The notes under the pieces: generated by a model
What the model was told of the DNA's origin: nothing
The model's database searches: none
What the model saw: the letters and a program-made list of their open reading frames with translations, nothing else
DNA from: Amoebophrya sp. A120
Lineage: Eukaryota; Protista; Dinoflagellata
Length of the DNA: 64,000 nucleotides
Assembly (NCBI GenBank): GCA_905178155.1
Contig: CAJINV010000012.1
Location: 1,368,492-1,432,491 of the forward strand
Direction of reading: 5' to 3'
In this document: piece after piece, positions 2,319 through 49,400 of the stretch
How positions within the stretch are numbered: the first letter of the stretch is position 1
Layout of the letters: each line of letters opens with the position of its first letter
Program-made: the position numbers and the translations under genes

Positions 2319-5300
2319 ATGCCCGCGCGCGGTAAGAAATACCCATCTAAGAACAAAGACCAAGATGATTCCTCAAATAAACTATCACCGAAAATAAAAG
2401 CGGCCTCAGATGTCGGTTCGCACAAGAGTTCTTCGGGAACAGCATTCTGCCACCAGCGCCAAGGAGCCGCTGCAACATCTGCAATCGAAGTTGATAACTG
2501 CTGTAGCAGCAGCGGAGGTACTGGCGGCGGAAAACAAGTCGCTGCGCGTGATAGTTCATCGTCGGGCAGAGGTACGAGAGAGAAGCAGCAAGTCTCGACA
2601 GCGACGCTGCTCCCCGATAGTCGACTTGGGGCTGTACTATCGGCGAAGAACGAAGCTATCACGAACGGAGGCGCGAAAAATGCGGTCCCGAAAGAATCTA
2701 CCTCATTGCGAAAGACGACCGCTATCGGCGCCACTGCGGAACTACAAGGGCAGCTCCAGCCGCAACGAGGGCAAACCAATATTGGAAATTGCAAAAAATC
2801 TGGAGCTACTAACACGGAAGAATGCCACAGGCACGCGCGCGATTCAAAGAACAAAAAGAGCAGCAAGAACTACTGCAAACAGAGTACTGCTACGAACAAA
2901 CACGGCTCGTCGACAACGAGGCACCTCAACTGTAGGAACAGCAGACACGACCGATATAAAAATCAAGCAACTTGCAGTGTCATCGGAAAGCTAGGCCGAT
3001 GCATGCAGGACTGGCGCGGTCTGCTGGTCTGCTTTTACATGGTCGTGATGATGCATTTAAAATCGATGGTGGTACTGCACCGAGCGGTGGTCTCGGCGAG
3101 TGCTACGAGTGTACCACTTTCATCCGCAACTGTAGTGCAGCACTCTTCTGGCTTGGAAAACGTGGCGTTTTTGCAGGGCCCGTCGTGGAGACTTGACGTG
3201 GATTTGGTGGAGAACAAGGGCCGAAACTACGGAATAAAGAACCACCCGCAGGATGACCACCACCTCCATGATGGTGCTCAACATAATTCAGGAATAAACA
3301 TAAAAGACGTGACCAGAGTGGATGAGGAGATGCTAATCGACGCAAACTTGGAGACCACCCTATTACAGTAAAAAATACCTCCACCCCGAAAGTTGCAATG
3401 ATTTGTGATGCGAAGTTTCCAAATGAAAATTTTTTGTGTTGCATGAAAGCACTATGAATCTTTCTGATGAAGAGTCTGGTAGTATACAGCGTTGCTAGTA
3501 CTATGACAAGCGCCACTCTTGCTGGGATCTTTTGCAATGCAAACTTTTGCTATTCACGACTGGAGATCTGTGATGCTGATACATGCAAGAGGGCGAGCGT
3601 TTCCATTGGAAAGGTTTGCAATGCAAATGTTCTTAAGTTCCGGGGTGGGGGCGTTTTTCATTGTAATACATCTGGCGAAAGCTGACTTTCGAGCCCGAGC
3701 TGGTCATCGGGCTGACCTCCGTTTTCCGGGTTTCCGGCGGTGGGGACTACCTTTTTTTGACCGTTTCGCGCATCTTCACCGACGCCTTTAACCCGGCGAG
3801 AACGGTCTTAGTCGTCGCCCTAACGGACGTGGAAAACGTCTCGTGGGTGATCGAGACCCGTATGCTAATGAAGAAAGCTAGCGTGGTAGATTTGTAATGC
3901 GAAAACTACAACTACAGGTCGTGCACAGAATTGTCATTGTCATGCTATCCGTTTGAGGACATGCGAATGGCAAAGAATTTATTCTAAACAGCTTTTTTTC
4001 TCTGTGATAACCCGGCTCCGTCTGATCCGCGCGTTTCCGCAGTACTACAAGAACGGGAATTTGCACATTGTCGTCCCTCCACGGGTATCCAGTGCAAAAG
4101 TTCAAATATCGTACTAAGTAGTAGAATCCCCATGACAAATTGTCTCAGCACGACGAAATATTATGGGCATTTGTCATGCGGATTTACTTTAATAAAGGAG
4201 ATTTGTGATGCGTACTTGCAATATAGTACGAAGTTGATACTGTTTTGCAATGCATAGCGCCGGTTCTACCCGCACCCCTGGTTCTTCATCAAGCACAAAT
4301 ACAAGGACGACGACAAGCGGGCGAAGTGGCGGACAATATGCATCGCAAATATGTCTGAGTCTGGAAAAAGTCAGACACTTGTCATGCAGCTTCTGCATCT
4401 TCACAGAGGTCTGTAATGCACGCAGAGCATGACAAATTCTTGGGAGGCTTATTCATGCCGAGCCCGCATGAGAAATACCCTCTCCCGAAGACATAAAGTG
4501 GGCATCTCTTGCTGACCACGCAACACAGATTTTTGCCTGTTCCAAAATCCGCATCACAAGTTTGCATCCTTCCAGACCCAGACATATTTGCATTTGATAG
4601 ACAAAGCAGAACTATGACGTTTCGTTTCTGCTGCTTTACTGCAGTTACGCGCCCGAGTCCGCGAAGTGGTTTCTGATGCTCGAAGACGACATTGCGACCA
4701 AGCCGAAGTTTGACGAGAAGGTGTTGAAATACCTGAGTAACCGGCGAACGGACTTTATCCACGCGCAATTCACCTATTTAGGCTTGATTGGGAAGCTGTA
4801 CCCGATGGAGACGATCCTGCTTTTCTCGAAATATTTGTTCCATTTCGCCGAGGAGCAGCCGGTCGATTGGCTCATCTGGATTTTCTTCGAAATGGTCACG
4901 CAGTACCCCGTGACGCCCCGGATTGTGCAGGAGAGCTACGAGGAACTCAGAAGCGACTTTGCCACCGTGCAGTCCATGCCACGACACACAATGCTCGGCC
5001 AGAGAATCGCGTTCGTGCCGAAGTGCAACGTCAACTACTCGGTGGTGCAAAATTTACCCCACCTAACCGCGAAGGAAGTGGATCTGCAGGGCATGGAAAG
5101 CGGGTTCCAGTCCACGTATGGGAGCGCGATGAGTACTTTTAGGTTTATCATTTGGCCGCTTGGTGTTGACATGATATACGTCCACGCAGAATGATTTTCA
5201 CGACAAACATCAACATTGTTTTTGCATAAAATCCAATATGATCAATTCAAAACAATCCTCCCCGCAGCTGACCTCTCCGTGAAATTCCCCGAGGCTGCAA

Positions 5301-8300
5301 AAGCCGTCGACCCCTCTATCCTCGACGACGCCCCCTATCTCGAGCCGCGCTGCATTCGTCACACGTACTCAATCAAGTTTGAAGCGGGGTGCAACACGGG
5401 GAAAGATGCGAAGTGCTCCCACTTGCGCTTCAAGCTCGGCGACGGGACCGGGCCAAATCAGGCACGGGAAAGTGTGACGGGGATCACGACGATTTTTTCC
5501 AATCCCCCGAATGTCCACGTGAAAATCTACGGAACGGTCAACCCCAACGACTGCAACAATTCCGGGGCGGGCACCGGGAGCCTGCCGAAGCAACTGCTGT
5601 TATCAATTGCAAATATGTCCTCTGGGTCTGGGAGATTGCGATATTTTTCATGCTAGTCTGGGATGACTCTGAAATCTGTATTGCGTGGCCGCGAAGAGCC
5701 CCTCTCGCCTGTCATGCAAAAATGCAGCTTCTCATGCGGAGTACGCAACTCAGAAGCACGGAAAAACTTGCCTTGCTGTGCAGCGCATCATAGATTGCTC
5801 ACTCTTCCCTTCTTTGCATCACAAGTTTCCAGACCCAGACATATTTGCATTTGATAGCTGTTTCAGCATCACAAAAACTGGAAAGCGCGGAGCTGGACCG
5901 GGTACGTGGAGTTGAACTGTTTGGTGCTAGTCTGGACGGTATGCATTGCAAATATGCCTGGGTCAGGAGGGAAGCAACTTGTGATGCTGGATGTGGATTC
6001 TACAATAAATTTGTACTGCATGATGTTGAACAGCATCAAAAGAGGTGTCCAGTTTTTGCCGTGGCGAGAGGGCATGATTTCTGATGCGGTATAGGCATCA
6101 GGCAGCCCTCATAAAATCTGTGATGCTAGAGCATGCGTCACAGATCGATCAGGAGTCATGCAAAATGTGCATGAGAAACCTTGCATCCTTCCAGACCTAG
6201 ACATATGTGCACTTGATAGACGGGCTTACAATCAGCGCCGTTCAAACTGAAGGTGATGCTGTATCGGTCCAAGCACGTGCCGGCGTATTCTGGGAACAGT
6301 CCCCAAGTGTCGTATTGAAAGGAAAAATCCCCCCTCCCCATAACGAAATTTCTGATGCTGGATTTGTGTACACAAATTCGAGCTGTCTTGCTGGAAAGCA
6401 CTACAGGCCCATACTAAGTGCGAGCAGAGGGGTTTCGGCCTAAGCGCGTAGCATGAAAAACGTCCGCGCTGTAGGCCCAGCAGCATGACAAATTGCCTGC
6501 AAAATGCGGCGGAGCCTTCGGGGTTGCCTTCTTGCAAGACAGACGTGATTTGTGGCCACAAATCAGCATCACAAGAAATTAGCTCCATCAAAAATATACA
6601 TTTTCAGTATGGGGAGGGGGGATTTTTCCTTTTGATATGTCGCAGAAGGTGAACTACGAGCTGCACAAACTGAAGGAAACCGGGTTGGTTGCCGCCTACC
6701 CGTATCAAGTGCAAAAATGTCTGGGTCTGGAAGAATGCCAGACTTGTCATGCAGATTTTATATGACTCATGAGGTCTGGTATGTAGGACAGAGCATGACA
6801 GATTCTGTGAGAGTTCTGTCATGCCTATCCTGCATGAGAAACTGCCTCTCGATTAGGTCAAAAGTGGACAGCTTTTGGTAATCATGCAACACAGATTTTT
6901 GCATGCTTCAGATTTAGCATGACAAGTTGCATTCTTCCAGACCCAGACATTTTTACATTTGATAACCCGGAAAAGCGCGTGCTGTACAGCACGACACAGG
7001 CGCGGCAGTTTTTCCGGGCGCAGAATCAGTACTACTTAAACCAAATGCTGGCGGGGAGTGGGGGGAAAATGCCAGTGGTGTATGGAGGAGAGGGGGCGGG
7101 TGAGAAAGATAAAACTGGCTCTACTTGGGTCCGCGTGCAGCCGAAGGAAGTCGTGTCTAGAAGTATTGAGAGGAAAAATCCGCCCTCCCCATATTGAAAA
7201 GATATGTTTCCGAACATTTGTGTTGCTGATTTGTGACCACAAATCAGGTTTGTCTTGCAAGAAGACAAGTGCAGAGGCATCCGCCCAATTGTGAAGCGAT
7301 TTGGCATGCTGTTGGTTCTAGAGGGTAGCGGTTTGCAATGCTGAACAACTAGACCTGAGCGCTCCCACCGAGGCTGCGGATCTGGCAGGAGTGCCGTACT
7401 GCAAGACAAGTCGGATTTGTGTACACAAATCAGCATCAGAAGTTTCCATTTTGATATGGGGAGGGGGGATTTTTCATTGTGATAAGAATTAGTTCCTCTA
7501 CTTCGCAAACAGTCGTGGATCAAGGCACCAATGCGGAACTGAATACAGCATCTGGACCAGGAGATGTTGAACAAAGTAGAACGAGTCATACTGATGTATC
7601 ACAGGCTTCAACAACAACAACCGTTAAAACTTCTTCATCCAAAACTGCGATCAACTCCGCCTCCCGCAGAGAGCGCAACAAACACCAGTACGCCGAAGCC
7701 AGTTCGCACATCAAGTGGTATGATAATGCGCACCAGCACCAGCACCCGGGGTCGCATTCTGCGGTAGGAGGGCAGCAGCAGAAGGGTACTACTGAAGACT
7801 ACGACGCCAGTGGGGCGTTGCAGGTTGTACTAGCAAACCAAAAATCAGTGTCAGGCACTTCGGACGTCGCTGCTAGTAGTTCTTCCAGTGGGCGTGCAGG
7901 TGCAGATACCAACTCCGGTACTTCTCCCGGTTCGGGCTTCACGGCCAGCCACGTTGTCACTTTGGGCCTTTCCGGGGAGCAGCTGTCTACCGCCAGTCTC
8001 GCGATGACGAAAGAGAGTTCATCTTCTTCGCCCGTAGACGACGCTGCAGAGAAACTGGTGGAGTACTACCTGATTGCCTACTATGGATGTGTCACGATTG
8101 AAATCGACAGAGTTCAAATAATTTGTCATGCATAAAATGCAAGGCATGAAATGCCTGTCTTGCCGGGATGGCAAGTGAGGCAGATTGTGAGCCTATTTAG
8201 GGTTAGGGATAGAGCTGCTGAAGGAGCATGACAAAAGCGGTCTTCTGTGCCCAAACAGCATCACAAATTGGATTTTGGCTCTACCCGAATTTATCATGTG

Positions 8301-11300
8301 CCGCTTGAAAATTGGGCTTCCAACTGGTATCCATTTTATGCATGACAAATCATTTCAACTTTGTCGATTTCAAACCTGACGCTTCCATACCTACACCTAC
8401 TTCTGCCTGGAGGTGATCGCGGGCGTGGGGCTTTTGCTGCTTTTGTACAAGTATCAATTGCAAATATGTCTGGTCTGTAAAGGTGCAACGTTTGTCATGC
8501 ATCTCGTGGAACACAAAGTTGGTCTGTGATGCGCCTACATGCATCACAGATTGTGCAAGAAGTCCTTCACGCGTATATCGCATGAGAAATTCGTCCTCTT
8601 TGTGGCTAGAAGTTGGTAGGAACTTTTGCCGTCCATGCACCTACACAGATACTTGTCTACTCCAGACGTAGCATCACAAGTTCCAATATTCCAGATCCAG
8701 GCATATTTGCAGTGCATAGCAAGTTCCTTGGGCAGGCGTTCTTCATCCACCGGGTGTTGCCGAAAGTAGTGTCCGGGGGCGAGGTATCCACTGCAAATAT
8801 GTCTGGGTCGGGAAAAGTCGGGGTTTGTCATGCACATTTGGCATGACCCGTGCGGTCAGTGATGCAGGTCCTAGCATCACTTATTTTTGGATAGCTTCTT
8901 GATGCTTATCACGCATGAGAAATGCCCTCTCCGTGCGCTAAGAACTGGACTCCTTTTGCTGCTCATGCAACACAGATATTTTTAGGATCCGCAGACAGCA
9001 TTACTCCAGACCGAGACATATTTGCAGTGAATACGAGGGGGCTGTTTTTCTCCATACAGGAAGGGAAGATGATGGTGTTCGTAGCGGTGAGGAGGAGATG
9101 GCGCCGATGGTCGAAGAAGAAACAGCTGCTGTTGGGAAGATTTCTAGCAAGAGAAATTCTTCTGTCCGTGACAGCACAACAAATCACGATCAGGAACTGG
9201 AACTAGTCGAAGAGCCAGTGTTGGAAGTTTTAGACGAAATCACCGGCGAGCCGCGGATCGTGCATTCCTCCGCGGCGAGTAGATTATCTTCGAGCATGAC
9301 CAGAAGGACGTCGTCAATCAATGAACTGGCAGGAACTCCACAGGAAACAACTACGGGCAGAGGTACTACTGAAGATTCTTCGCCTCTCGCCGGTGCAACT
9401 AGACATTCATCATCTCCCAGCCGAACGCCAAGCCAAGGACGAGATCGTCGTAGTAACAGTTCTACTCCCTCCTTCCAGCAACTCCAGCAGGCGGAGCTGA
9501 ATTCCACAAAACAGCTGGTCAAGCACTTTCTGTACCTGCTGATTTTCCAGGTGTTTCTGTTCGCCACCGAGACCGGGATCTTGGACATGTGGCTGATTCT
9601 CCACCTAGATCCCCAGTTTTCCGTCGCTTTGTTGCCGATGCTGAAGGAATTAGAGTCGAAAGAGAAGGAGTTAGCGACTTCGGTCATGGACGACTTGCGA
9701 AACAAAAAGTTCGACTACGGGAGCGGCGCGGGGTTGGCGACAGCCGCTGTATTAAACGCCCATCTTGCAGCGCCGGCTGCGACTGGTGCTCAAGGGAACA
9801 AATTAGCAGGAACTACTAGTTCTGCTTCTGGTAGTTCTACTATTAAAAGCGCGGAAGAAGAACTACCCAGTGGGGCAGGGGAGATGTTGGCAGAGAAAAA
9901 GTCAGAAGACGCAAACGGGGGGCACACTGGAGCTGGTACGAACCAAACTGCAGCGCACAGTACGGCCTCGGTAAGTGGTGCCTCTGTATCAACAAAAAAG
10001 CCCAGTAACAGAAACATCGTGAGCACTTTGACGGGCGACGACTGGATTAAGCTTCATTTCCTCCGAGCCATGTCCCGCCACTCCGGCTGGATGCCGCAGA
10101 CAGAGTCTTCGGACTTGACCGCAATAAGGCAAATCGTCGAGGATTTGCGGACAAAGGAGGAGGACGACGGTGGAGAAGACGACGACACAAGCATAATTAC
10201 CCCAGCGGATTTTGAAATATCAAAAAAGAGCTATAGGAAAAAAAAGCACGACTCTTCTTCTTCGTCAAGCAAAAGAACTTCCAAAAGCGGCCTCCACACG
10301 ATGAACAAACAGCGGCCGAAAGACCGCACCTCGTTTTCGGATCTTTACGAGTTCATCCCGTACTATGGAACTGTCAGGATCAAAATCGTCAAAGTTGAAA
10401 TGATTTGTCATGCAGAAAATCGATACCAGTTGGAGCCTCAGTTTGTAAGTGGCGCATGACAAATTTCGCGAGCACCCAAATCCAGTCTCTCATGCTGTTT
10501 GGGCAAAGAAGACTGCGCCTGTTATGCTACTCTGGCAGCGCATTGCATACCCCTAAACAGGCCCACAATCGGTCTCATTTGCCTGCTCCGCAATACAGGC
10601 CTCCAGCGCCCTACATTTTACGCATCACAAATTTTTCGACTTTGATTCTGACACATCCATACGTACAAGAGGCCGAGAGTGAACCTCTGCGTCGCACTGA
10701 ACGGCTTCGACTTGCCACAATATGACTTGCCCAAGCGTTACAATCTCAAGCGGTACAATAGAATCTGGAATTTGTGTTGCATGATGAGCATGACAGACTC
10801 GCACAGCGTTCCACCTTTTGCAATACAAATTTCGCCAGATCCTCGTGGGGTTTGGGGCTCCGGAACTTGTCATGCGCAATCCTATGAGACTTGGCTAGAT
10901 CATGCACTCTTGCATCACAGATTTCCATATTCTATTGTAACGCTTGAGATTGTAACACCTGAGCGGGTTATACACAATTCCTCGCTTTTCTGCAGGAGGC
11001 GGAGCATTTTTTCCCGCTGCACAACGATCTGGCGGTATCATTTGTAAAAACGCTCCCACCGCCCCAGAGTTGTAATGCAAATCTGCATGCTGAGCATGTT
11101 TTTCATGCGGAGACCCATGAGAAGCAGTTTCTAGTCGCGTTTTGGGATTTGTGATGCTAGAAGAAGCATGACATGCTAGATCTGTGATGCTGCTGAGCAA
11201 GCTAAACAGGATTACACTACGAGAGGCCAAACTTGTCATGCGCAACAGCAAAAGCTGACAGATTTGTCTAGCAGATTTCCCAGCTTGACTCTGGTGTGGG

Positions 11301-14300
11301 GACGTTTTTACTCAGGATAGGCGGTCGTGATTGAAGTGGATTTGACGAAGGTTCTGGAACACCTGCTGGTGAAAGTCGTGTCTGAAAACCAGGCCGGTGA
11401 AGATCACGTGCCACCTAGACGGTCATTACAAGAACAGCCAGGAGGGGTCGTCGACGTCCAAACGGCAGAGCAAGCACAAACGGTCGTTACACACACCATA
11501 GCGCCCGCCGGTGGTCTTGCGGCAGGAGCAGCAACAGCAGTCGCAGCGGCATTACCCGCTTCGGCAGGTAGTAGTACTTTCGTCGAAAAAGGTAGTAGTA
11601 CCGCAGTACAGCATGCAGCAGCCGGTTCTCAGCTTGGTTCGAAAGCGTCCCCGGCCGACAAGGTTCTCGCAAGTGAAGCGGAAGAGGAGGAAGTTAGGAA
11701 AGTCGGCGCCGCGGCGGAACAAGAACATGGACAACCGACTACTGTAGCAGCAGCAACAGCTGCAACGACGGTAACGCCATCTACTGCTACTGCTGTGCCC
11801 GTACCACCACCAGCAGTTCCTGTAGTTTCACCTCCTGTGAGGAGCAAGAGGAAGAAAACGTTGGTGGATGCTTTTTTGCAAGAAACCAGCAATAACGTCG
11901 CAGAAGAGGACCACGCAGGTCCAGCTGGAGCTGCACTGTCGCAGGACAATAAATTCACCGTCTTGTTCAACGACCAGAAGCTGCAAGTGATGAAGAAAGC
12001 CATCCGGGAGGCGGGCTGTAAAATCATTCTCTTATGCATTGCAAATATGTGCGGGTCTGGATGAAGGATGTGGACTTGTCATGCGCGTTTCGCATGAGCC
12101 ATGATGTCTGTGATGTACGCCCTAGCATCACAGATTTTTTGAGGCCGTCTTGATGCCTATCCCGCATTACAAATGCCCTCTTCGCGTAGCAAGAGTTGGA
12201 CTTCTTTTGCTGCTGATGCAATACAGATTTTTTTAGAATCTGAACACAGCATCACAAGTTGCACTCTTCCAGACCCAGACATATTTGCATTTGATATCTC
12301 TCCAAGTCCGACAACCTGAGCGGATGCTATCCTGAGCAAAAACGTCCCCACCCCATAGTCAAGATGGGAAATCTGCTAGACAAGTCCCCAAGTTTTGGCT
12401 GTTTTGCATGACAGGTTTGCCTCTGCAGTGTAGTGCTGGTTAGCAAGGGAAGCCGCATTAGAAAGCCACTTTCTAATCCTGCTTACAGCATTACAAATTC
12501 CAAAACACGATTGCAAATGCTTCTCATGGAGCTGCGCATTACAAACGTTCCTGTCATTGCGCATTTGCATTAGAACTCTGGGATGGGGACGTTTTTACAC
12601 AGGATAGCTGTCACGTCTTCTTCATCGACCCAACGGAATACCAGGCGTTTTCCCGGGGCATTCGGGAGCGGAAAACGAACGGAGCTCGGGGGAGTGGTGT
12701 TCTCGGGGTGCACAGAGACCTGGTCGCGTTCTTCTTCAGATCACTGTACTTATTGCATTTCAATTTTTTCCTTGAGTTACTACTAGGTAGTGTTAAAAAG
12801 CAATGTGCAAGTAGTGCATACCGTACAGCAAGGTACTACTTACAACAAAGACAATAAACCCGGCTGTTGAATAAAACCAGGTTTCATATCCCCACCCCGG
12901 CACAACAACAACAAGACGCGACGTCACAGAACCAGTTCCGTTCCGCCCGATACAATGGTAGTAAAGTGCACCAACATAATTCTGACCCCCTACCCGAAGT
13001 TTTCCCGAATCGGAACACCGACGTAACGCTTCTGTACGAAGCGGTGAAAGAGTGGAATCCGCAGTTTTACGTGGAGCTCACGCCGCGGATTTTTTTCCGG
13101 CATTTGCTGTTCAACGCGAAAGACCACGACCAGAAAAACACGTTTTGGGAACAGGTGATCAAAACTCACGTTTTATCCAATTCCGCGAACAACCAGCACC
13201 ACTTCATGACGAGCGTCGACGGCAAAGAACAGTTCCGGTTCCAACTGGCGAGTTTTGTGAATTTCAACCCGGACACGCCGAAGAATCTGGCGGGAAAATT
13301 ACTGATCAACACGACGGGGACGAGATTAGTCCGGCTTTTGTGGTTGTTGACGAACAATTTCTTTTACCAAAAACCCTGGCACTTGAAGCAGTTTTTGAAG
13401 AGCAAGAACGCAGCGGAGGACTTGGGGCTGGTGTCGAGCTTTGAGAAAAACATGGAAGAGAAAAACGTGTTGCACTTGACCAGCAACTATCAAGTGCAAA
13501 AATGTCTGGGTCTGGAAACTTGTAATGCTAAAAATGAATGATAGACGCACTGCAGTACGCAGCTATGCATGGCAAATTTTTTGGCTGCCATGTCTTACGT
13601 ATTCCGCATGGCAAACTGCGTTTTTGCATGACAGGTAAGAGGGCTTTTTCGTGCCTATGCAACACAGATTCTCGAGTCATGCCAGACAAGCATGACAAAC
13701 TTGCATTCTTCCAGACCCAGACACTTTCACATTTGATAGCAACTACAAAAACTTTTACACGGGGCTGCCGCAGAAGGAATATGCGGTCTATCTGTGGACG
13801 GAATCTATGCTGGATCGCGGAAAGCCTTCCCCGCCCAACGCGATCGGAATCTCCGAGCAGTGGAAAACGAACCCACTGGTCGTATGCAAGAAAAAAACTG
13901 TGTAAGTGTAAATCTGTGATGCAGAAAATGCAAAACAGTTACACTTGTCATGCCCAACATGCCTGATCGGCTCCCTTCCCAGGTGTTTTCCCTTCCTATC
14001 TGCGCATAACAAGTTTGTCCTGTGGTCGTGGCAGACAAACTTGTGATGCAGTTTTCCCAAAAGACTTACACTAACACAGTTTTTTTCTTGGATAGGTCGC
14101 GAGCTTCCAGGACGACAACCCGACCGAGACTTTGCTCGAGCACGTGGGGCACTTTTCGAGTTTGGAGAAGAAAATCCAACTCCTGCACGATACCCGGGCG
14201 GGGCTGGCAGCGTGGAACAAAGAACATTTTGACAGTTCTATCCCGAGTAAAAACGTCCCTGCCTTCCCAGAGTTGTCATGCAAATCTGCATGCCAAAAAA

Positions 14301-28400: not shown

Positions 28401-31400
28401 TTGTTAGCGGAGGTCGATTTATTTGAGAGCGTGGAGGAACGGGAAAAGTTTTTGCACGAGGATATTGCCGACAGACTGGAGGACCCGGTGTACATGGGGA
28501 TCGATCTGGTCTTCTTCGACCAGGAAGGGAAAGAAGTGGTCCAGCCGTTCGAGTGGCGTTTTGGGATCTGGCAACAGGAGCAGGAAGACCTGGCTATTGC
28601 GCGGAGGAGGATGGAAATGGAGAAACAGTTGGAGAATGTAGTCGTGGAAGCAGTTGGAGTGGACGGTAAAGAGGAGAAGGAAAAAATTGCGAAGCAAATG
28701 GTAAGAACAGCGATTGATCTGGTGAAAGAGGCAGATAAAGGGAAAGTCGAAGCCGCTGGGGCGCTAGGGGAGAAAACTCCAGCTGTAGATGACCCGGAAA
28801 ATGTAAAAATTGCAGCAGCTTCAGAACCTCCTCCAGTGGAAGAGCACGACAAAAATGAAGACGCAGTAGATCAACACCAAAACAAGCAAAGAGTTGGCAC
28901 TTTTATGGTGTCGGAGAAGTCGGACACGGATTTGGATAATCTCCACCACGTGCAGGACAGCACGAAGTCCACCCACGTTTTTCTGCCTTTAGCTTTCCAA
29001 GTGCGGAAACTGGTTTCGGAGAAAACCTTTGGGGAGGAAAAAAAACAGGGAAAAAAGACGAAAGCAGAGGCGGACCTCCACCTTGAAGACCCGGAGAAGC
29101 TCCTCACCGTTGAAAACTTGATCAATATGGCAGATCTATACGTGAGACAAGCGGTCGCAGCGAAGGAGTTAGAAGAGGAACTGGAGCAGGCGAAGTTGCA
29201 GCTAGTACCATCTTCTGGTGGACCACGAAGAAGTACAGCGACAACTTTAACTGCGGGCGCAGCTGCTGCGTCTAGAAGTACTGCTTCTGCAGTTCCTACG
29301 GCCCCTCCACCACCACCTAAAAGTAAGAATAAAAGGAAGAAGGGTCAAGCATCGGCTGCGCCCAGTTCGACCATCGGCGAGGAGGTGGTTTCCGTAGTCT
29401 CTGCTACGCCTGGGATTGATGGTGAAGAAAGTACTAAAGCGCCGGAAAGTAGAAGTACTTTACCCCTTGCGAGTGCAGCAGCCCATGACAATTCACATTT
29501 AAATACTCCGCCCGAGCAGATGAAAAGGATGGCGCGGAATCTGAAGCGATTTTTGCGCGCCGCAAGGTACTACTTACCGGAAAGGGACGAGGACATCATC
29601 GAGCAGCTAGGGATGCTTAATGCGCTGAAAAATCGCTGGTCTGGACAGAAAAGCGGCGTCTTTGCAGCGGACGGGGATATCGGGGATTCGCGAGTGCGAA
29701 TCTGGGAGGAGGTATACTTTGTTTTTTTTTCAGCAATAATTTTTCGGTTTTCTTGAAAATAACGTGTCTCTTACACGATGAGAGTTCCATCGGCAGAAGA
29801 AATTGAAGTAGTTAATACAGCCACACTTTGATGTCGTCTTTGCATGTCTACTTAGTGCTATGTGTACGAGAATGAATAAGAAGCTGCATCCCACTTCTCT
29901 CCACGACCTCATTTCAGCTCGGCCAAGAGAAAGTTTTGAAACCTCCACCTATGACGTCTTCCTCCTCCCAGGGCAGCACCGCGGCGTCAAACAAGCCCGA
30001 GCCAATTCTATCGATTCGCGCTTGATAAAACGACGCAGCAGGGGAGCCGGCAAAAGGGGCGCCCGCCGCCTTTTTTTCTGGCGGTTTGGAGCGCCCAAAA
30101 AGGGGCGCCCAAAAAGCAGCAGCCCGAAAAAGACAGCGAATCCGCATGGTATGGGCCCCATTTATGCCCACACTCGGGCCCCGCAAAAGACGCCACCAAA
30201 GTCCGCCACGTCGGAGGCGGACTTAAGGCCAGAAGATGCGGCATTTTGACAAAAAAAACAAAAAAAAACAAAGGCCGCCAAAAGCAAAAAGCCAATCCGC
30301 ATGTTATGGGCCCGATTTGGGGCGTCCAAGGGGCCGGCCCTGGCGGGGCCTTAGCATGCGGAGAAGGTTTTTTGATTCGAAACCAAATTGAGGCCAGCGC
30401 TGGATCGAGATTTTTAGCGAACGCCGTGCCGCCGTGCATAACATTACGCACGATGGCATGGTGGGCAGAGAGTTCGCATCTTTTTTTGGCGTGAAGACAA
30501 AAAAAACCCCACTACCTCACTACCCCCGCTGAGGCGGCTATTGTATGCGTCACTGCCGCAGTCAGTGTGGTCGGTCCTCCTCTACCTGAGATGAATGTAC
30601 AAAAGCCACTTCCTCTCTCCACGACCTCATTTCAGCTCGGCCAAGAGAATATCAAATGCAAAAATGTCTGGGTCTGGAAGATTGCGAGATTTGTCATGCT
30701 GATCTGGTATGGCCTTTAAATCTGTATTGCGTGGCCACAAACAGCCTCTCTCGCCTGTCATGCAATAACGCAGTTTCTCATGCGGAATACGCGGCACAGA
30801 AGCACGAAGCAACTTGTCATGTTTGGCGGCGCTTTACAGTGCATTTGTTATTGACTGACTTGCATGACAAGTTTCCAGACCCAGACATTTTTGCATTTCA
30901 TAGAGAAAGTTTTGAAACCTCCACCTATGATGTCTTCCACCTCCCAGGGCAGCACGGCGGCAACGGCTCTAGCGGGAAGAGTACTACCTAGTGGAAGCGG
31001 CAGCAGCGGTGGTTCTACAACTCCCGGCACTACCCCCGATCTGTTTGCCCAGTTGAAAAACATATCCACCAAGGAGTTCCCGCAGGGGAATAGTAAAACC
31101 CACGCTCCGATTGTGCGGCGGGTGGCCGAAATTACCGATGAGACCAAGATCAACGCTTTGAACGTGATTTTAGGGTTCAGTATTCTGAGTAAAAACGTCC
31201 CCACCCCAGAGTTGTCTTGCATATCTGCATGCCACAAAAGTTTCTCATGCGGAGCCCCATGAGCAGCATTTGCTAGTGGTGATTTGGAATTTGTGATGCT
31301 ACAAGCGGCGCAATATGCTAGAGATGTGATGCTGCTGAACTAGCTAAACAGGACGACATTACGAGGACAAACTTGTCATGCGAAACAACCAAAGCTGGTT

Positions 31401-37400: not shown

Positions 37401-40400
37401 ACCCCACGAAAAAACTGTTTCGCTGTGAACTTGTGATGCATGGAATGGAACATAAGACTATTTGTCTTCCTACACATGCAAGACATTGGATTTATCAAGC
37501 TGTTTTCCCTTGGGAAGTGCGCATGGCAAATTTTCTGTGCCATGTGCAACAAACTTGTGATGCAGATCTTGCAAAGTCATCACATTGAAACAGTCTTTTC
37601 CTGCGATAGTCGGGTGGTAACCGCTACTGTGGCAAAGGTTCCGGATGACAATGGGGGGACGAGTATCCTATGTAAAAACGTCCCCACTCCAGAGTTGTCA
37701 TGCAAATCTGCATGCTGAAAATGTTTCTCATGCGGAGCCCCATGAGGAGCATTTTCCAGTCGTGTATTGGAATTTGTCATGCTCCAATCAGCGCGATATA
37801 CTGGATCTGAGATGCTGCTGAGCTAGCTCAAACAGAACTACAATACGAGTCCAAATTTGTCATGCAAAACAGCCAGAGCTTCTGGATTTGTCTAGCCGAG
37901 TCCCCATCTTGACTACGGGGTGGGGACGTTTTTACATAGGATAACGAGTTCAGTAGACCTGCAAAACCCGCAGGTGTTTCAGCCGACGACCCAGAATGTG
38001 CTGACGCACGACGGGAAAGTTTTGGAAAACAAACCGGGTAGGGAGTTGCATACGTTCACGTGGACGAAGCCGAAGGAGGGAGAGTCGGTGACCGCTCCAG
38101 AAGCTGTGGCAAGGAATCCCTCATCTGCCTCTGTGAGAGTTCCGAACGACACCTGTGTGGAGGTGGATAGGTTAGAGGAGGGCCTGATGTCGGAGTTTTC
38201 GCAGAAGGCATTTTTGACAAAAACCCGGAAACCGATTTTCGCCACCGGGAATGATGTTAAAAATGCCAGAACTTCTAATATGCGACCGACTGAAGGAGCT
38301 TCCCGTGCCGCTGTTACCGTCGACGAGAAAAAAGAAGATGAAGAGGGAGAATCCCAAGGAAGTTTTTTGGACTTTTGGCGTCGTGGAGTAACACGCAAAG
38401 CAGGACCAGCTCCTGTATTTCCTCCTGTAGCTTCCGATGCACCTCCAGAGGTTTTCTCCGAAGATGGAGCGGCTTCGGTAGATAGCTTCGTGCCCAGTCC
38501 AACAAGTCCCAGAGATAGTATTAAACCTCGTCCGCGACAAGTAGAGCCTGCTATATTACCGAAGGTGGATCTGCTTTTGCAGGAGGTGGAGGACAAGCTG
38601 TTTGCGAAGGTGAAGCATAGACACGGCATAAAGCCATCGAAATCACACGAACACGAACAGCCTGAGGAGGAAATAAAATCTGACAACATGATACACAACA
38701 AATACGCCGACCATTTCCTGGCCAAGAGGGAGTGTGCGTCGTCGCAGTTGTATCCAACGAAAAAACTGTTTCACTGTGATGATTTTGCAAGAACCGCATC
38801 ACAAGTTTGTTACACATGACACAGATAATTTGCCATGCGCGTTCCCCACGGGAAAACACGCTTGAAAATCCAATGTCTTGCAGATGTAGCAAGAAACGGG
38901 ACGCTTTGGTGCTTCATTTTCTCACCTCCAGGGGCCCTGGGCACCTCACCATTGATGTTTCACTTGGTGGAAGATGACAGGGTTCTACGAGCTATTATGG
39001 GTGTCTTTCTATTGTCTATTCATTTTCTGCATCACAAGTTCACAGTGAAGCAGTTTTTTCTTGCGATAAGTTGCTGGATAACGAGGAGATGGGTTTTCAC
39101 CAAAAATTCCTAAAAACGGTAGACCAGATTATGACCCGCTCAGGTGTTACAATCTCAAACGTTACAATAGAATAATGAAATCTGTGATGCAAGAGTGCAT
39201 GATCTAGCCAACTCTCATAGGATTGTGCATGACAAGTTCCGGAGCCCCAAACCCCACTACAAACTGGCGAAATTTGTATTGCAGAAAGTAGAACTCTCGC
39301 CGAGTCTGTCATGCTCCTCATGCCAGACAAATCTCAGATTCTATTGTAACGTTTGAGATTGTAACAGCTGAGCAGGTTATACAGATCCTCCGACTGCTGC
39401 AGGACGAGGTAGCGCTTTTCCCCGGCGCTGTACATCCAGTAGGAGCTGCGCCTGAAAAGGATTATGCATTGCGAATATGTCTGGTTCTGGAAATAATTTG
39501 TGATGCTAATTTATGAATGGTGGGGACACTGTAGTCGGCAGCCACGCATGACAAGTTTCTGGGCTCCTTTGTGTTTCGCTTTCCGCATGACAAACTACAT
39601 TTTTGCATGACAGGCAAGAGGCTCTGATCCTGCTCACGCATTACAGATTCAAGAGTCATGTGAGACAAGCATGACAAACTTGCATTCTTCCAGACCCAGA
39701 CATGTTTGCAATGGATAAGGATCACTTTGAGACGCATCTCGCCCGCGCAGTCGAAAGTTTCGCCCGGTCCGAATCGTCCTCCTCCGATGGAACGGCAGCA
39801 GAAACAAGCCCTTCTAGTCCTCACCAAAATCTTCTTCCGTCCGAGCCGAATAGTCACCAAGAAGAACCTCCGTTCGAGGTGGCGGAAAAGAGAGCCAACA
39901 AGAAAAACAAAAAAGTCGAGGAGAGAACAAGTAGACAAGTCCATCTGTTATCCGCGATCCCACTGGAACTGAAGAAACTTCCACTGATACAAGCTTGTAC
40001 CGAAAATCAGTTGTCGCAGGCACAATTATCCGACTACTCAAGTACGCGAATCGCGTACGCAATGGAGGTTTTAAACCGGGAGTTAAAACAGTACCAGAAA
40101 ATTGCTTCTGCCTGGGTGCTATCAAATGCAAATATGTCTGGGTCTGGAAAGAGTTAGAATTTGTAGTGCTAGGTTTCAATTGTACCTACGTGCAAAAACG
40201 CAGTTTCTCATGCGGACTGCCTATGAGAAAGCGTTCTGGAAAGTTGTCATGCTGGGCTGCGTTCGAAAGTGGTTCCATCATCCACATTTTAGCATCACAA
40301 GTTTCCAGACCCAGACATATTTGCAATGCATAGGTGCAGATCGTCCGGGACGTGCAAGAAGGGAAAACGGGAAGGGACGATCCGGATTTTGAACTCTACG

Positions 40401-43400: not shown

Positions 43401-46400
43401 TGTCTGGGTCTGGAAGAATGCAAGTTTGTCATGCTTGTCTGGCATGACTCGCGAATCTGTGTTGCATAGGCGCGAAAAGGTCCTCTTACCTGTCAGGCAA
43501 AAACGCAGCTTGCCATGCGGAATACGTAAGACATGGCAGCCAAATGATTTGTCATGCGCAGCTGCGTATTGCAGTGCGCCTACCATTCACTTTTAGCATT
43601 ACAAGTTTCCAGACCCAGACATTTTTGCAATCCATAACATGCACACCGCGAATCCGAACGGCAATCCCCACGCGGCGGCAAACCACCACAGTCTGACCGC
43701 GCAGTCGTTATCAAATGTAAAAATGTCTGGGTCTCCTGGAACATTCTAAACTTGTGATGCTGTCTCTGGATTCTGAAAAAATTTGCATTGCATGACCAGC
43801 AAGAGGACTCCAGTTTGTGCTACGCGGAGAGGGCATTTCTCATGCGGTAGAGGTATCACAAAGCGCTCTAAAAATCTGTGATGCTACGGCATGCATCACA
43901 GACATCATGGGTCATGGAAAATATGCATGACAAATCTAGAAATCTTCCAGACCCAGACATTTTTGCATTGGATAGTCGCGGAGTGTCAACGAAAAGGGCG
44001 ACGCGAGACTCCCACCGGATTTACAGAAGGTGTCGGAGCTGTCGCATAATTTGTTCCAGTTAGTGCTCGGGCTGAAGCAGGGGAGACTCGGCGCGATTGG
44101 GCGGGCGGTGAACACTTTGAATGTAGAGACCTGGCGAAAGGAGAAGAAAAGAATCTCGACCGAGATCGGCCCGGAACTTTTGTATGAGAACCTGCCGCAG
44201 AAAGAATGGATCCTGCAGATCAGGAGGGTAGAGTTAGAGTGGCTGGATTACTGTGCGAACTTACAAGGTGGAACTGGGACCACTTCTGGCGCAGCGACAT
44301 CTGGAGCAGGAGTAGACCCGTCCAACTGCAGCGGCTCATCATTTCTGGAACAGAGCGGTTATGGAAGTAGCTCGGGAGGTGGTGGGCAGACTATCAAAAC
44401 AGTCGCTTCTTTGATCCCCCATACCTACGCCGACGCTTTCGACAAGCAAAATGCGATTTTTGCCGGGAAAGCGACAAACAATCCGAATGTTTTCATGGCG
44501 AAGAGCACAGCGCACATCAAACCTTCCGAGCAGCAGCTGTCTCCCGGCGAAAATAGTACTGACTTGAAACAGTACGCACAAGATCGGGAGTACGCCGCGG
44601 TGTATTTATTGAAGAAGGATTTCATCCTCCCTGTGGATATCAGCGGAGATAAGAAACTGCAAAAAACCGTGGACAAGCAAACCAAACATTTGAAAACCCC
44701 ACTGAAAACGGTAACTTTTAACCAAAAAATGGTGCGGGATCTGCTAGAGTTACATATTTTGAACGCGAAGCTACGGCAGTGGAACAATGAAAACAGTAGG
44801 AGGAAGCGGAATTACAGTCGCGGGGCGTGGATACGGTACGCGTTTGGGTACGAGGACGCGGTTCCGGAGCCGATCCCCTGCATGCCCATTATGAGGTCGG
44901 AGACTTGGAAGTGGTGGCCGGTGAACGTGCGGCATTTTGCCGGCGGCGACGGCGAGGAGCTCGCGGTCTTGCAGCGACCCGAGAGCTATCAAATGCAAAA
45001 ATGTCTGGGTCTGGAAGGTTGGAACTTGTGATGCTAACTTTGGACTCTAAAAAAATCTGTATTGCGTGACCAGCGAGAGAAGTCTAGTTTGTGCCATGCG
45101 GGGAGGGCGTTTGTCATGCGGAGTAGGCATCAGGAAGCCCTCTAAAAGTCTACGATGCTAGGTCGTGCATTACAGACATCCTGGGTCATGCAAAACATGC
45201 ATGACAAGTCTCAGAATCTTCCAGTTCATTGCACCCAATTTGTATGTTGCGCAAGTGATAGTATAAGTAGTAATAGTTAGTACCACCGGTGGACATTTTA
45301 GCATGTTTAATCTCTCTCTACATAGTGCATTCACGTAGTTCTCTTTTATTTTCTTTCTTCAAAAAGTTCAAGTCGTTCTCTTCCCCGTGCTGTACCAAGG
45401 TCTTGTTTCCAGACAAAACACCAGACATATTTGCAATCCATAAGAGCACAAGGATGGTGCTGCGGGCATATGACTACACAGAGGAGGACGAGGAGGACAA
45501 CAACGGTATCATTTGTAAAAACGTCCCTACCCCAGAGTTGTGATGCAGATTTGCAATGACAGGAACATTTGTGATGCGTATCTCCATGAGAGGCGACGTT
45601 TCTAGTCGTGTTTTGGCATTTGTAATGCTGTAACCAGGATAAGCAGATGGATTTATGATGCGTGTGTCCTTGCTAGCCTGCACTACACTACGGGCTGGAA
45701 CTTGTGATAAGTGAGTCCCAAAATTTCTAGGTTTGTGTTGCAAAGTCCCAATCTTGACTATGGGGTGGGGACATTTTTACACAGGATAAACGGCTGCTCG
45801 AAGTGGGCGGCCGAGGAAGCAGAGAACCACTTCTTCCCTATCACAAAAAGTGAGGAACCAGCCCAAAAATCACCGCCAGGTGGGTCGAGCAAGATTGTGC
45901 AAACGAAAACCGCAGTGAAGGTCAAGAGGTGGCTGTATTCCCGCCCAGCATGGCAGCAAGGGATGCCGTTGGAGAAGAAGGAAGGGAATCATAAATCTCC
46001 CCCAGCGGATATCACACAGAAAAAAGCTGGCGGGTCATATTTGTAATGCCAAAATAAATAGACAAAAAAGCTTGTATTGCATATCCTAAATAGCATGCTA
46101 TGAGGCCGCCCATGGCAGATTGTTCTGTGTATTTATTTTTGCATTACAAATACCAGCCATGCCCCGGCTGACGCCGGGGCGCTAGGCTGTTGTGGCGGGG
46201 CAGGACTATTTGCGGATCGGGACGCCGCGCCAGGGCTTTGGACGCAGCGCGACAGCCCCCCCCTCCAAGGAACATACTGTCGCCGTTTTGCGCCATGCAA
46301 ACCCGCAGGGTCTCCTGCGCGCTTCCCGCGCCTTCAGGCGCTATGCGCAGGGAGCAGCTGCAGCGAAGCTTGGGGGCAAAGAGAAGCCGCCTCGCCGTAA

Positions 46401-49400
46401 GTGCCGAAGCACAAGGGGGACCACGCTGCCCTGTGTTGATCACGCTCCCGCCCCCGCCCAATGGCTTCCCGGCCGACGGAACTGCTGGCGCAAGAGGGTA
46501 TCGCGAGAGGGTGGCGCGAGAGGGTGCGCGAGAGGGTGGCGCGAGAGGGTGGCGCGAGAGGGTGCGCGAGAGGGTGGCGCGAGAGGGTGCGCGAGAGGGT
46601 GCGCGAGAGGGTGGCGCGAAAGGGTGGCGCGAGAGGGTGCGGGCCCAAGCGACGCAAAAATCCCCAGAAGATCGGCCCTGTACCGGGCGGATTCGGGTTG
46701 TTTGTACCCTCTCGCAGACCCTCTTTTTTACCTCTCCCGAGAGGTGTTGCTAATAGTCCGGCTATACTCGCCGGTAGAGGTCTACAGAGGTGGCCGAGAG
46801 GTGGCCAGGAGGGTGCGCGAGAGGTTCGCCCTTATTCGCGCAACCTCTCGGCACCTCTGTCCCGCTCTCGCTTACCCTCTTGGCACCCTCTCGGCCCCCT
46901 CTGGTCCCTATAGGCGCGGCTTTAGGGTGAACGGTTCGGCTCGCTATACCCGCGCACCCTCTCGGCCACCCTCTCGAATGACCTCCCGCGCCACCTCTCC
47001 ACCTCTGTCGACCTCTTTTTGACCTCTGTTGACCTCTTTTTTACCTCTCGGCCACCTCCCTTCGACCCTCTGTAGACCTCTTTTTTCGCATGAATATAAA
47101 AGATAGTAATGCCAATGCCCTGCCAGCTTTTTTCTATGGGATAGCGGAAGCGGAAGCGGAGACTGATGAAAATGACTTTGATCACCTCTACAAGCACGGC
47201 AAGTGGCGGCCGAGCCGGGGCAGGCACGCGGTGGTTCAAAAACTTTCGCGACAAATGGACCAATCCGCGACGCTGGCAGCGCTTGATAGGGAGGACGCGG
47301 CGCTGTTCCTGAAGGTGTTGGTAGAGAAGCAGTTGAGCTGCGAGCAAATGTACGAAATGTTGCGACAGGATAGCAAGCTCGTGGAAGCGGCGTGTGGGAT
47401 TGGTGGGGCAAAGAACCCATCGTTTTCACAGACCTATTGTCCGGTTTTGGAACAGGAACTAACGGCAATGAAACAAGCAGGACCTGCACCTCTGGCAGGA
47501 GGTTCTACTTCGAAGCTGCCGGAAACTACAACATCTCTGCTGCTTCCGCCGCAACAAGCAACCGGGGCGCCTGTTGCTTTGTCGAAGAGCGCCGAGCGGA
47601 AGCAGAAACAAAGGGAAAAGAAGCTACAGGAGCAGCAGAGTAGATTTGCCAACAAATCTACTTCTGCGGGTGCGCAAAGCAAGGCGGGAGAAGCAGGAGC
47701 TCTAGGTGATGCTTTTTTTGCCAATGCGGATCATGGTCGTGACCACGCCGCCGAGCAGGGGAAAGTAGATCCACAGCAGGACATCAAAAGCAAATACTTC
47801 CTCCCGACGGATTTCTTCGAGCCGACCATTATCGGAGAGGGCGAAGACTATGAGTTCTTGGCGCCGAAATTGTACAAGCTGCGAGACTACGCACTGCAAA
47901 AGCTGCACAATCGTATTCCGTATAAATCGCATGAATAAAAATGTGTAATTTTCTGCAGAAGAACACTCGTGAACTTGTCATGCGGAAGATTCAGGTACTA
48001 GTACTTCTAGGGAAAAATCAGATTTGTGATCATGCGTGATTGCAGCCAAAAATAGTACCGGTGTGGTGCTTTTGGAGTGGATAGACCCGAGCAAGAGAAA
48101 AACGCCAGTCACATGCTCGCGCAGTTCAGTATGGGATTCTCAAGTGTTACATTCTCAGCTGTTACAGGAATTTGTTATGCAAAAGCATCATCATCATCCT
48201 CACGATCAAGCTGCTCCGCATGACAAATTTGTGAAGACCTAAACCGCACCTAAATCTGTGCGGAATTTGTAATGCTACGGGTGCAACCTTCCCCCTTCCA
48301 CTTTTCCAATTCTTGCATCACAAGTTTATGTAACAGTTGAGAATGTAACAGTTGAGAGCGCCATATTCAGCGACCTGGGGGCGTTGATGTCGATGTACAG
48401 TTTGAAAGCGGAAGCTATTTTCGAATACTTCGAATTCCAGTATCAGAAATTGATTCAAAGTGACAGTGCTGTTTCTGCCCCCGATGCAACCGCAGCTGCC
48501 TCGAGTGGTAATTTTCACGGCCCACATCAGCCACATCAGGGCGGGGTCAAACTCCAAGACCATCAGCTAGCCGCCCGGCCGCAAGGGAGATCAGAAAATG
48601 CAAAGCTTGCACGTATTTCTTCTCATGTTGCAGCACAGCAGCCGCAGTCGGAGAAGTCCTCAGATGCAATAGACACATCTAGCGAAGAGTCCACACCAGA
48701 ATCTTCCGGCGAAGCAGAAGAAAGCGGTGATAGCGTTGATGAAGACACAGCAAAGAGAAGAAGAACCCCGCAAGAGAGGTACGATATCGAGATCCAAAAC
48801 GTGCAAAAAAATGTGGAGCCGGAAGAGGTCACGAGTTTGTCCCACCACCTGTACCCCCGACCACCGGGAATGCTCCTGTACGAGGGGGAGTGGGTGGAGA
48901 AAATCCTCGAACCGAAGCAGAATCTGCAGTGGTTTCGCAATCGGAACAGCGGGTTGGTCCATTTAGCGAGGATCCACGTGGACAACAGTAGATTCGCGAG
49001 GATGATTCTCAAAGAAGACTTATCCTGAGCAAAATCGTCCCCACACCAGAGTCAAGATGGAAAATCTGCTAGACAAATCAACCAGCTTCGGCTGTTTCGC
49101 ATGACAAGTTTGCTTTTGTAGTGTAATCTTGTTTAGGTTGTTCAGCAGCATCACAGCTCTGGCCTATTATGCTGATTGGAGCATTGCAAATTACAAAACA
49201 CGACTTGAGAATGCTTATCATGGGGCTCCGCATGAGAAACATTTTGAGCATGCAGATTTGCATGACAACTCTGCGGTGGGGACGTTTTTACTCAGAATAA
49301 GACTGGGACGAATTACTGTTCGAATTCGGAGCGACGATGAGAACCGATTTGTACCTGCTGATGGTGAAAACGCAGGAAACGCTCGAAGTCTCGCCCGGCC

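Follow-up and report, generated by a model that had tools for sequence, protein, structure and literature searches.

Protein-coding genes in a 64,000-nt stretch of the genome of Amoebophrya sp. A120 (contig CAJINV010000012.1, positions 1,368,492 to 1,432,491; this whole stretch is called here the window) are interrupted by dozens of short elements bounded by terminal inverted repeats (TIRs). The best explanation of these elements, to which we assign a probability of about 0.8, is that they are the introner elements published for this strain, that they originate from TIR transposons, and that they are removed at the RNA level with the borders of removal set from the ends of each element. The phenomenon is already known and no new class is added here. 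The original prediction for this DNA had proposed an unknown, structure-guided removal; this is reasonable and matches the published view of the mechanism, but the phenomenon is not undiscovered, as it was described in 2021 (PMC7789003).

The final census of the window holds 72 elements resembling MITEs (miniature inverted-repeat transposable elements), which occupy 19.7 kb, or 31% of the bases, at a density of about one per 0.9 kb. Their lengths are mostly 200–325 bp (median about 263 bp), and their ends consist of TAT...ATA termini and TIRs of 20–35 nt, flanked by a 5-bp target-site duplication (TSD). A scan for TA...TA ends with a 20-nt TIR of at most five mismatches and a 5-bp TSD of at most one mismatch gave 67 matches in the window, against 0 and 1 in shuffled sequence; a stricter scan gave 37, against 0, 0 and 0 in the shuffles. 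Extra copies with indels in the TIRs or decayed TSDs were recovered by family hidden Markov models (HMMs). Ungapped TIR stems mostly measure 22–44 nt. Among the 71 elements located in open reading frames (ORFs), the TSD is perfect in 57, and it carries one mismatch in 10, two in 3, and three in 1. The insertion event itself is visible in a paralogous pair of sites about 0.7 kb apart, with one GAGAA at the empty site and two copies of GAGAA flanking the element 30650-30902 at the filled one. The elements are non-autonomous TIR transposons that inserted into coding sequence in either orientation, with a 5-bp TSD.

Open frames were counted after in-silico deletion of each element together with one TSD copy, as well as of the canonical intron at 12746-12880. 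Deletion restores forward-strand ORFs of 7,275, 2,872, and 1,797 aa, compared with 1,938 aa for the largest ORF of the untouched sequence. Read-through meets an in-frame stop in 70 of the 71 elements, the removed length is not a multiple of three in 55 of them, and the codon phases at the 71 junctions are uniform (25/24/22). In-frame stops, non-triplet lengths, and restored ORFs together mean that removal is required and exact. The three restored proteins are giant orphans, none of which has a Pfam match or a sequence homologue in exon-by-exon searches: six exons were without Pfam match, and two word-indexed searches and one exhaustive HMMER search with single exons returned no exon homologues, the sole matches being to the tails of ORFs encoded by the elements.

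The level at which removal occurs was addressed by comparing contigs of sequencing runs over positions 7400-13300 of the window. Run X1 contains 84% of the sampled words, and its contigs (7456-8145, 8363-8922, 8975-10412, 11295-12124, and 12579-13300) cross exon–element borders at a depth of 40–48 throughout, the same in elements as in exon-only stretches; the intron 12746-12880 is retained. X1 is genomic DNA in which the elements are present. Run X3 contains 56% of the sampled words, close to the exon share of about 60% in this stretch. Its 4,156-nt contig is composed of the pieces 9770-10358, 11320-12027, 12609-12745, and 12881-13300, and lacks the elements 10364, 10721, 11036, 12033, and 12328 (single elements are named by their first position), each exactly removed. 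The two gaps in its record, of 112 nt and 28 nt, equal the exon remainder after exact removal of the first three and the last two of these elements, respectively, each with 5 nt. Elements of family B in both orientations (11036 and 12328) are removed in this single contig, alongside elements of families E and F, and two further right-hand junctions are covered by X3 pieces starting at 7485 and 9034. The absence of the GT-AG intron 12746-12880 from the same contig indicates that X3 is RNA-derived; since this intron and the elements are lost together, canonical and non-canonical introns coexist in one transcript. Two raw RNA-seq runs of 2026 under the same species label (X9 and X10) gave zero reads for the 5.9-kb locus and so provide no test of removal; they probably come from another strain, too divergent to map.

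The borders of removal do not follow the dinucleotides of known introns. For every junction, all positions that give the same product were listed by sliding across the repeat. GT-AG, GC-AG or AT-AC can be reached in this way in 7 of 71 elements, against 5 of 71 in a mirror-strand control, which is the level of chance. These are GT-AG at 8785, 13883, 31581, and 40120, exactly the four sites that had been named in advance as the only ones with this possibility, GC-AG at 11036, and AT-AC at 14931 and 43386. The remaining 64 elements have no canonical option even after sliding, and thus carry neither U2-type nor U12-type terminal dinucleotides. TSDs free of any G, from which no sliding yields a donor beginning with G, were confirmed as well (CCTAC, CACAA, TCTCT, CACAC, TCCAT, AACAC, TCCAC, and AAACT). 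A search for a consensus in flanks and TSDs of 109 elements found none; the best signal, a depletion of T at TSD position 4, had p ~0.02 uncorrected over 30 positions and was treated as non-significant.

Members of one family were predicted to occur in opposite orientations within forward-strand genes, and all four pairs named for this hold. In family E, the 10364 copy is complementary to positions 8114-8389 of the element 8082-8389 (276 nt, 76%); in family B, 11036 and 12328 are complementary over 93 nt (85%); opposite pairs are also present in families F (10721 and 39130) and G (35653 and 38751). In a wider set of 98 elements inside forward-strand ORFs, taken from the window and 200 kb of contig 2 and compared by internal sequence alone, the families split by orientation into 12/15, 5/10, 6/8, 7/6, 2/7, 4/3, 2/2, 1/3, and 1/2, with zero inconsistent edges, and every family with at least three members is present both ways inside forward-strand genes. 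With 64 of 71 elements devoid of a canonical option and both orientations of family B removed, the claim that removal is precise, independent of orientation, and not based on GT/GC-AG dinucleotides is borne out. The accompanying statement that there is no strand-specific polypyrimidine tract is half right. Both orientations of every element read 5'-UAU-N7-AAAA at the start and UUUU-N7-AUA-3' at the end, because the symmetric TIRs present the same end sequences either way, so that a short U-run is always found near the 3' end. For the same reason, as the same linear signals are shown in both orientations, orientation independence alone is no proof that the stem sets the borders.

The position of the cuts within the TSD can be narrowed at imperfect repeats. 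At 12328, the contig joins 12324 to 12609 with 2 nt of slide, and the RNA reads GATGT from the TSD copies GATGC and GCTGT; the left copy therefore supplies position 2 and the right copy position 5, which places the cut after position 2, 3 or 4. At 7164, the RNA-derived piece starts exactly at 7485, so that TSD position 5 stems from the right copy and the cut lies at or before position 4. If one rule holds for all elements, the cut falls after TSD position 2, 3 or 4, that is, 1–3 nt before UAU and 2–4 nt after AUA, with offsets that sum to 5. The excised RNA consists of the element and 5 flanking nt. The exact removal of 12328 despite two mismatches in its TSD shows that removal can do without a perfect repeat, and this speaks against mechanisms driven by homology.

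Within the elements, recognisable signals are concentrated at the ends. In 63 elements, positions 1–3 are T, A, and T in 63, 63, and 58 cases, and positions 11–13 are A in 54–59. The TIRs pair at positions 1–3 in 58–63 of these elements and at positions 8–24 in 48–62 (at least 53 except at position 8), and positions 4–7 are often unpaired because of two alternative end variants, TATGCATTGC and TATCAAATGC. In the largest family (e.g., 970, 12033, 40120, and 51236), the two variants occur at the left and right ends in all combinations, which leaves many copies with a small loop within the stem, immediately interior to the closing UAU/AUA pairs. A test of constraint on elements detected by their TIRs was rejected as circular and was redone on 159 copies detected by family HMMs (nhmmer), with matches that ended no more than 8 positions from each end of the model. 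Divergence from the family consensus amounted to 0.8% at positions 1–3, 2–3% at positions 11–13 (the A-run), 8.9% at positions 8–25, and 21.5% in the core. Compared with the core, private substitutions were rarer by a factor of five at positions 1–3 (odds ratio 0.20, p = 2.5e-6) and slightly rarer at positions 8–25 (odds ratio 0.78, p = 0.013). The terminal stem is part of the minimum-energy fold in 61 of 62 elements, with a median z of -6.9 relative to shuffles. The earlier proposal that the TIR stem defines the borders is partly supported, in that the ends carry all recognisable signals and the stem is predicted almost throughout; a machine that reads sequence would fit as well. It is also worth noting that a 9-mer, TTGTVATGC (TTGT(A/C/G)ATGC), or its complement is common to unrelated element families, at 7.9 per kb against 0.37 per kb in exons (20-fold enrichment), and usually lies about 40 nt from each end (e.g., 8123-8131, 8340-8348, and 10405-10413). 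Since the family B copies of the 9-mer lie on one strand and yet both orientations are removed, it does not act as a signal in single-stranded RNA; more probably, transposase binds this shared repeat.

From these data a course of removal can be proposed. The whole element is transcribed with the host gene, and the RNA loses exactly the element and 5 nt, by which the pre-insertion sequence is restored. The borders would be set from the element's own ends, namely the invariant UAU...AUA together with the pairing of the TIRs into a terminal stem, and not from splice-site dinucleotides. The 5' cut would be made 1–3 nt before UAU and the 3' cut 2–4 nt after AUA, the two summing to 5. As symmetric TIRs offer the same geometry and the same end sequences either way, orientation is irrelevant. 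The stem itself may be what is measured. For the route, one without classical recognition of 5' and 3' splice sites, carried out by a structure-measuring endonuclease and a ligase as is suspected for the nonconventional introns of euglenids, is tentatively put forward, at slightly less than even odds; the identity of the acting enzyme is here something that we infer. A more specific version, which we consider unlikely, is a spliceosome-independent pathway serving about 30,000 hairpin introns, in which the TIR helix, closed by UAU/AUA and identical in sequence to the double-stranded transposon end, would be bound by a nuclease that cuts at fixed offsets summing to the 5-bp integration stagger, after which a ligase would rejoin the exons. 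This pathway could derive from the transposon's own DDE enzyme.

Several observations weigh against this explanation. The label of X3 as RNA is a guess, and the argument leans on the missing canonical intron and on published RNA-seq. The position of the cut rests on only two informative junctions (12328 and 7164). The copies in the constraint test had to be recognisable within 8 positions of both model ends. Mismatches in the stems have no wobble bias on the sense strand (58 G.U against 53 A.C), so they do not directly indicate that an RNA helix is under selection, and sense folds are more stable than antisense folds only marginally (p = 0.023). Against a non-spliceosomal enzyme in particular, the search of the genome found at least 10 copies of U6, fully canonical and with both ACAGAGA and AGC preserved, and RtcB and the tRNA-splicing endonuclease are present only in ordinary numbers, with one gene and two loci, respectively. 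The A120 genome paper reports 83 of 89 spliceosomal proteins (PMC7789003), and a U1-70K homologue is reported in strain A25. The linear signals of the TIRs are fixed, UAU resembles positions +2 to +4 of GUAUGU, and a U-run lies near the 3' end.

The last of these points lead to the strongest alternative, a relaxed major spliceosome, in which two-step transesterification would be placed by linear TIR signals (5' N|N-UAU(G/C), U-run, ...AUA) and the hairpin would merely join the ends. It is a serious contender, although we regard it as less likely than not. A normal GT-AG intron is spliced from the same transcript, and a cut after TSD position 4, which the data allow, would make the intron start with N-UAU, in which case 36% of the elements start with GU. 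There is also a precedent in the non-GT-AG introns of Fritillaria, which derive from MITEs, and tunicates show that evolution can bring a spliceosome to handle 95% non-GT/AG introns (PMC13326754). However, the first and last nucleotides of the introns are derived from the TSD and are essentially random, whereas known spliceosomes, including that of tunicates, keep some terminal pattern. No branch-site or distance signal was seen, and the U-run and the termini would be buried in a stem of at least 25 bp, in folds of about -100 kcal/mol. The authors of the A120 genome considered that the mechanism differs from the usual machinery (PMC7789003).

The survey of machinery does not decide between a relaxed spliceosome and an endonuclease–ligase route. 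For U1, U2, and U5 small nuclear RNAs (snRNAs), the genome search gave no match, a search too insensitive for any inference on U1 (U2 is reported in the genome paper), and Rfam returned no family on the window. Integrase-class (rve-type) DDE genes are numerous, with at least 30 matches, which fits a TSD of 5 bp and the integrase-like TIR elements of PMC12130899. No match to the piggyBac-type transposase PF13843 was found in the genome, the control genomes for this search being silent too. An intron of the tRNA type, with a bulge-helix-bulge, was considered and rejected, as the flanks are direct repeats and unable to pair (position -3 is complementary in 0 of 63 elements) and only the standard enzyme loci are present. 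The RtcB gene (G000:C5:6115035-6117073, reverse strand) matches the corresponding Pfam model as five separate segments, with 91–271 nt between them, and could serve to calibrate junctions by homology. Genes for U6 snRNA, tRNA, and signal recognition particle RNA lie within 900 bp on the same strand (L001 1501-2372; G000:C1:320702-323807), forming a small Pol III cluster.

The original prediction had also considered programmed excision at the DNA level, like that of the internal eliminated sequences (IESs) of ciliates. In such a scheme, a domesticated transposase would use the TSDs as pointers and cut the elements from the DNA of transcribing nuclei. The elements are indeed true transposon insertions with TIRs and TSDs, the exact loss of one repeat copy resembles pointer-guided removal of IESs, integrase-class DDE genes are abundant, and the sequenced DNA may stem from one life stage only. 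However, the DNA contigs keep both the elements and the canonical intron at exon depth, crossing exon–element junctions at 40–48 with no element-free DNA joint among the joints listed, and the RNA-derived contig has lost both. The element-free form was seen solely in a contig that also lacks the GT-AG intron and is hence RNA-derived, although contigs would not show a rare or stage-specific DNA excision. X3 also has contigs in which an element end continues into unrelated flanks; these could be precursors from other loci that are not yet spliced. Exact removal extends to an element with a degenerate TSD, no piggyBac-like transposase was matched in a search whose control was silent, and the TA ends, which had been likened to ciliate pointers, lie inside the removed part, the retained repeat being the 5-bp TSD. 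DNA excision is therefore highly improbable. A reading of equally slight probability dispenses with RNA removal in the cell and lets template switching by reverse transcriptase make the element-free cDNA and ribosomal bypassing make the protein, or lets RNA polymerase skip the hairpin; a hairpin with flanking direct repeats is a classic substrate of template switching and is also the arrangement of translational bypassing, as seen in T4 gene 60 and the yeast mitochondrial byps, but the spliced form is an assembled path over six consecutive junctions of the 4,156-nt contig at exon depth, 39 bypasses of 150–450 nt in one mRNA are implausible, the TSDs are not codon-aligned (junction phases 25/24/22), and exact processing at a degenerate TSD argues against homology-driven switching.

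The closest analogy to the removal of introners from RNA is that of the nonconventional introns of euglenids, reportedly known from the work of Milanowski and Guminska. In both systems there is no GT-AG and no requirement for a polypyrimidine tract, terminal complementary segments join the ends, TSD-like repeats lie at the borders, a MITE origin is suspected, and conventional introns occur alongside. For euglenids, genetically defined cuts are made at fixed offsets outside a short terminal stem, 5'-N3CDG...CH'GN5-6|R (Nomura et al., 2025, PMC12501133), and the products are reported as circles, not lariats (PMC11282704). This signature was not found in the window, where the ends read UAU(C/G)... 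and ...(G/C)AUA; the architecture is analogous, and the code and the lineage (Euglenozoa versus Alveolata) differ. A 3-bp CAG/CTG core in euglenids stands against a UAU/AUA end and a TIR of 20–35 bp in Amoebophrya, and offsets of 3 and 5–6 nt against 1–3 and 2–4 nt (sum 5). Products are known as circles and rules have been genetically tested in Euglena, whereas the rules for Amoebophrya given here come from sequence and contigs. A second case is that of the MITE-derived non-canonical introns of Fritillaria and Oikopleura, said to have been described by Henriet and co-workers in 2019. These too are transposon-derived introns that break the GT-AG rule genome-wide, and they are attributed to a U2-type spliceosome that has been modified, with changes in U2AF and in the modification of snRNA (PMC13326754). 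Recurrent terminal patterns, e.g., AG-A(N), are retained in the tunicate introns, whereas the terminal nucleotides of the window elements are random target-site bases. Ciliate IESs (the TA-IESs of Paramecium, the pointers of Oxytricha) share with the window elements a transposon origin, the interruption of coding sequence, and exact removal that keeps one copy of a short repeat. However, they are cut from DNA by domesticated transposases in the somatic nucleus, whereas the window elements are kept in DNA and absent from the RNA-derived contig, and their TA is located inside the removed part and is not a pointer. Finally, the canonical introners of Micromonas, Aureococcus, and Polarella, reportedly treated by Huff in 2016, Gozashti in 2022, and Roy in 2023, are likewise transposons with TIRs and TSDs whose insertion, in either orientation, gives rise to introns. 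They differ in being ordinary spliceosomal introns, with GT and AG either brought along or acquired (the TSD often provides one of the two), which is impossible for 64 of the 71 window elements.

The features discussed are collected in Table 1. Apart from these, a 1,134-bp element at 46010-47143 (TSD GCGGA) appears to be an introner with a nested insert; it belongs to the restored 7,275-aa ORF, and the GC content there is unusually high (57%). A short 150-bp family (TATCCTGTGCAAAAGTATCG...) that is rare in the window dominates the contig 2 region (L004-L023, G000:C2:3000001-3200000; e.g., stitched positions 3145-3295 and 13015-13164), where one element is found every 1.7 kb or so (roughly every 2.2 kb if only the end scan is counted).

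Table 1. Introner elements, restored reading frames, and associated features, with positions in the window.
Feature	Position	Strand	Details
Restored ORF, 1,797 aa	5195-16014	+	19 elements and one GT-AG intron removed
Introner element, TATTGAGAGGAAAAATCC... family	7164-7484	.	Imperfect TSD AGAAG 7159-7163 / AGAAT 7485-7489
Family E element	8082-8389	.	Perfect G-free TSD CCTAC at 8077-8081 and 8390-8394; RNAfold -126 kcal/mol, z -8.3, 22/25 terminal pairs
Family A-like element	8452-8718	.	TSD ACAAG/GCAAG, one mismatch
Family A element	8785-9033	.	TSD CGAGG; GT-AG reachable by sliding; an RNA-derived contig starts again at 9034
Long inter-element exon within 1,797-aa ORF	9039-10358	+	No Pfam match; covered by RNA-derived contigs
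Family E element, opposite orientation to 8082-8389	10364-10661 (with TSDs 10359-10666)	.	TSD CGTAC; removed in 4,156-nt RNA-derived contig
Family F element	10721-10972	.	TSD CACAA; opposite-orientation relative 39130-39381; removed in RNA-derived contig
Family B element	11036-11319	.	TSD GGCGG; three copies of the shared 9-mer on one strand; removed in RNA-derived contig
Family A element	12033-12296	.	TSD TCTCT; removed in RNA-derived contig
Family B element, opposite orientation to 11036-11319	12328-12606	.	Degenerate TSD GATGC/GCTGT; removed in RNA-derived contig
Ordinary 135-nt GT-AG intron	12746-12880	+	GTACTT...ACCAG; missing from X3 contig, kept in DNA contig 12579-13300
Restored ORF, 2,872 aa	19348-29753	+	7 elements removed
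Empty paralogous target site	29896-29985	+	Single GAGAA
Restored ORF, 7,275 aa	30495-63573	+	39 elements removed
Filled paralogous site	30614-30961	+	Flanks as in 29896-29985; element 30650-30902 between two GAGAA copies

The identification of the elements with published introners rests on the description of "introner elements" in Amoebophrya sp. A120 (Farhat et al., 2021, BMC Biol 19:1, PMC7789003), cited here from the portion of the paper that was available. It reports more than 60% non-canonical introns in this strain, with a mean length of 240 nt, and 29,850 introner copies that make up 17% of the genome (assembly of 115.5 Mb). The introners carry inverted repeats of 8–20 nt that form a hairpin, with a motif of TAT, seven variable nucleotides, and at least three A, and direct repeats of 3–5 nt over the exon/intron borders. 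Genes lie in co-oriented blocks and encode fast-evolving proteins; U1 snRNA was not detected, and U2 was reported. Removal was supported by RNA-seq, and the authors proposed that the hairpin joins the exon borders and that the splicing mechanism is distinct, leaving it unknown (PMC7789003). Later papers treat A120 introners as known, without giving a mechanism (PMC11282704; Gozashti et al., 2025, PMC12130899; a 2026 review, PMC12787238). The window elements show no essential difference from this description and agree with it in their non-GT-AG borders, the inverted repeat forming a hairpin, the direct repeats at the borders, the TAT-N7-A-run motif, and removal supported by a transcript; their length of about 260 nt, compared with the published mean of 240 nt, their occurrence in tens of copies per gene, and the co-oriented orphan genes around them agree as well. 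Beyond what the available portion of PMC7789003 contains, the window adds near-even use of the two orientations, a uniform 5-bp TSD of the TAT...ATA class, cuts at TSD position 2–4, removal even where the TSD is degenerate, a scarcity of terminal private mutations, and a subterminal 9-mer unable to act as a single-stranded RNA signal. In that portion of the paper, "orientation" is used for genes only, so it may not yet have been made explicit in print that both orientations are used almost equally, though this is expected from the biology of TIR transposons.

The removal of tens of thousands of introns without splice-site dinucleotides is an open problem in Amoebophrya as in euglenids. What is added here is a set of testable cis-rules: the UAU...AUA ends, the A/U-runs, and the TIR are the sole constrained signals, cutting takes place within the TSD, the repeat need not be perfect, and a single transcript can lose elements of both orientations. 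With these rules, reporter assays and the mapping of intermediates toward the enzyme can be designed more narrowly. The intron 12746-12880, in the same transcript as five elements, is a handy internal control for work with inhibitors. A spliceosome-independent route, if true, would be a second general system of mRNA splicing in eukaryotes, convergent with or related to the euglenid machinery.

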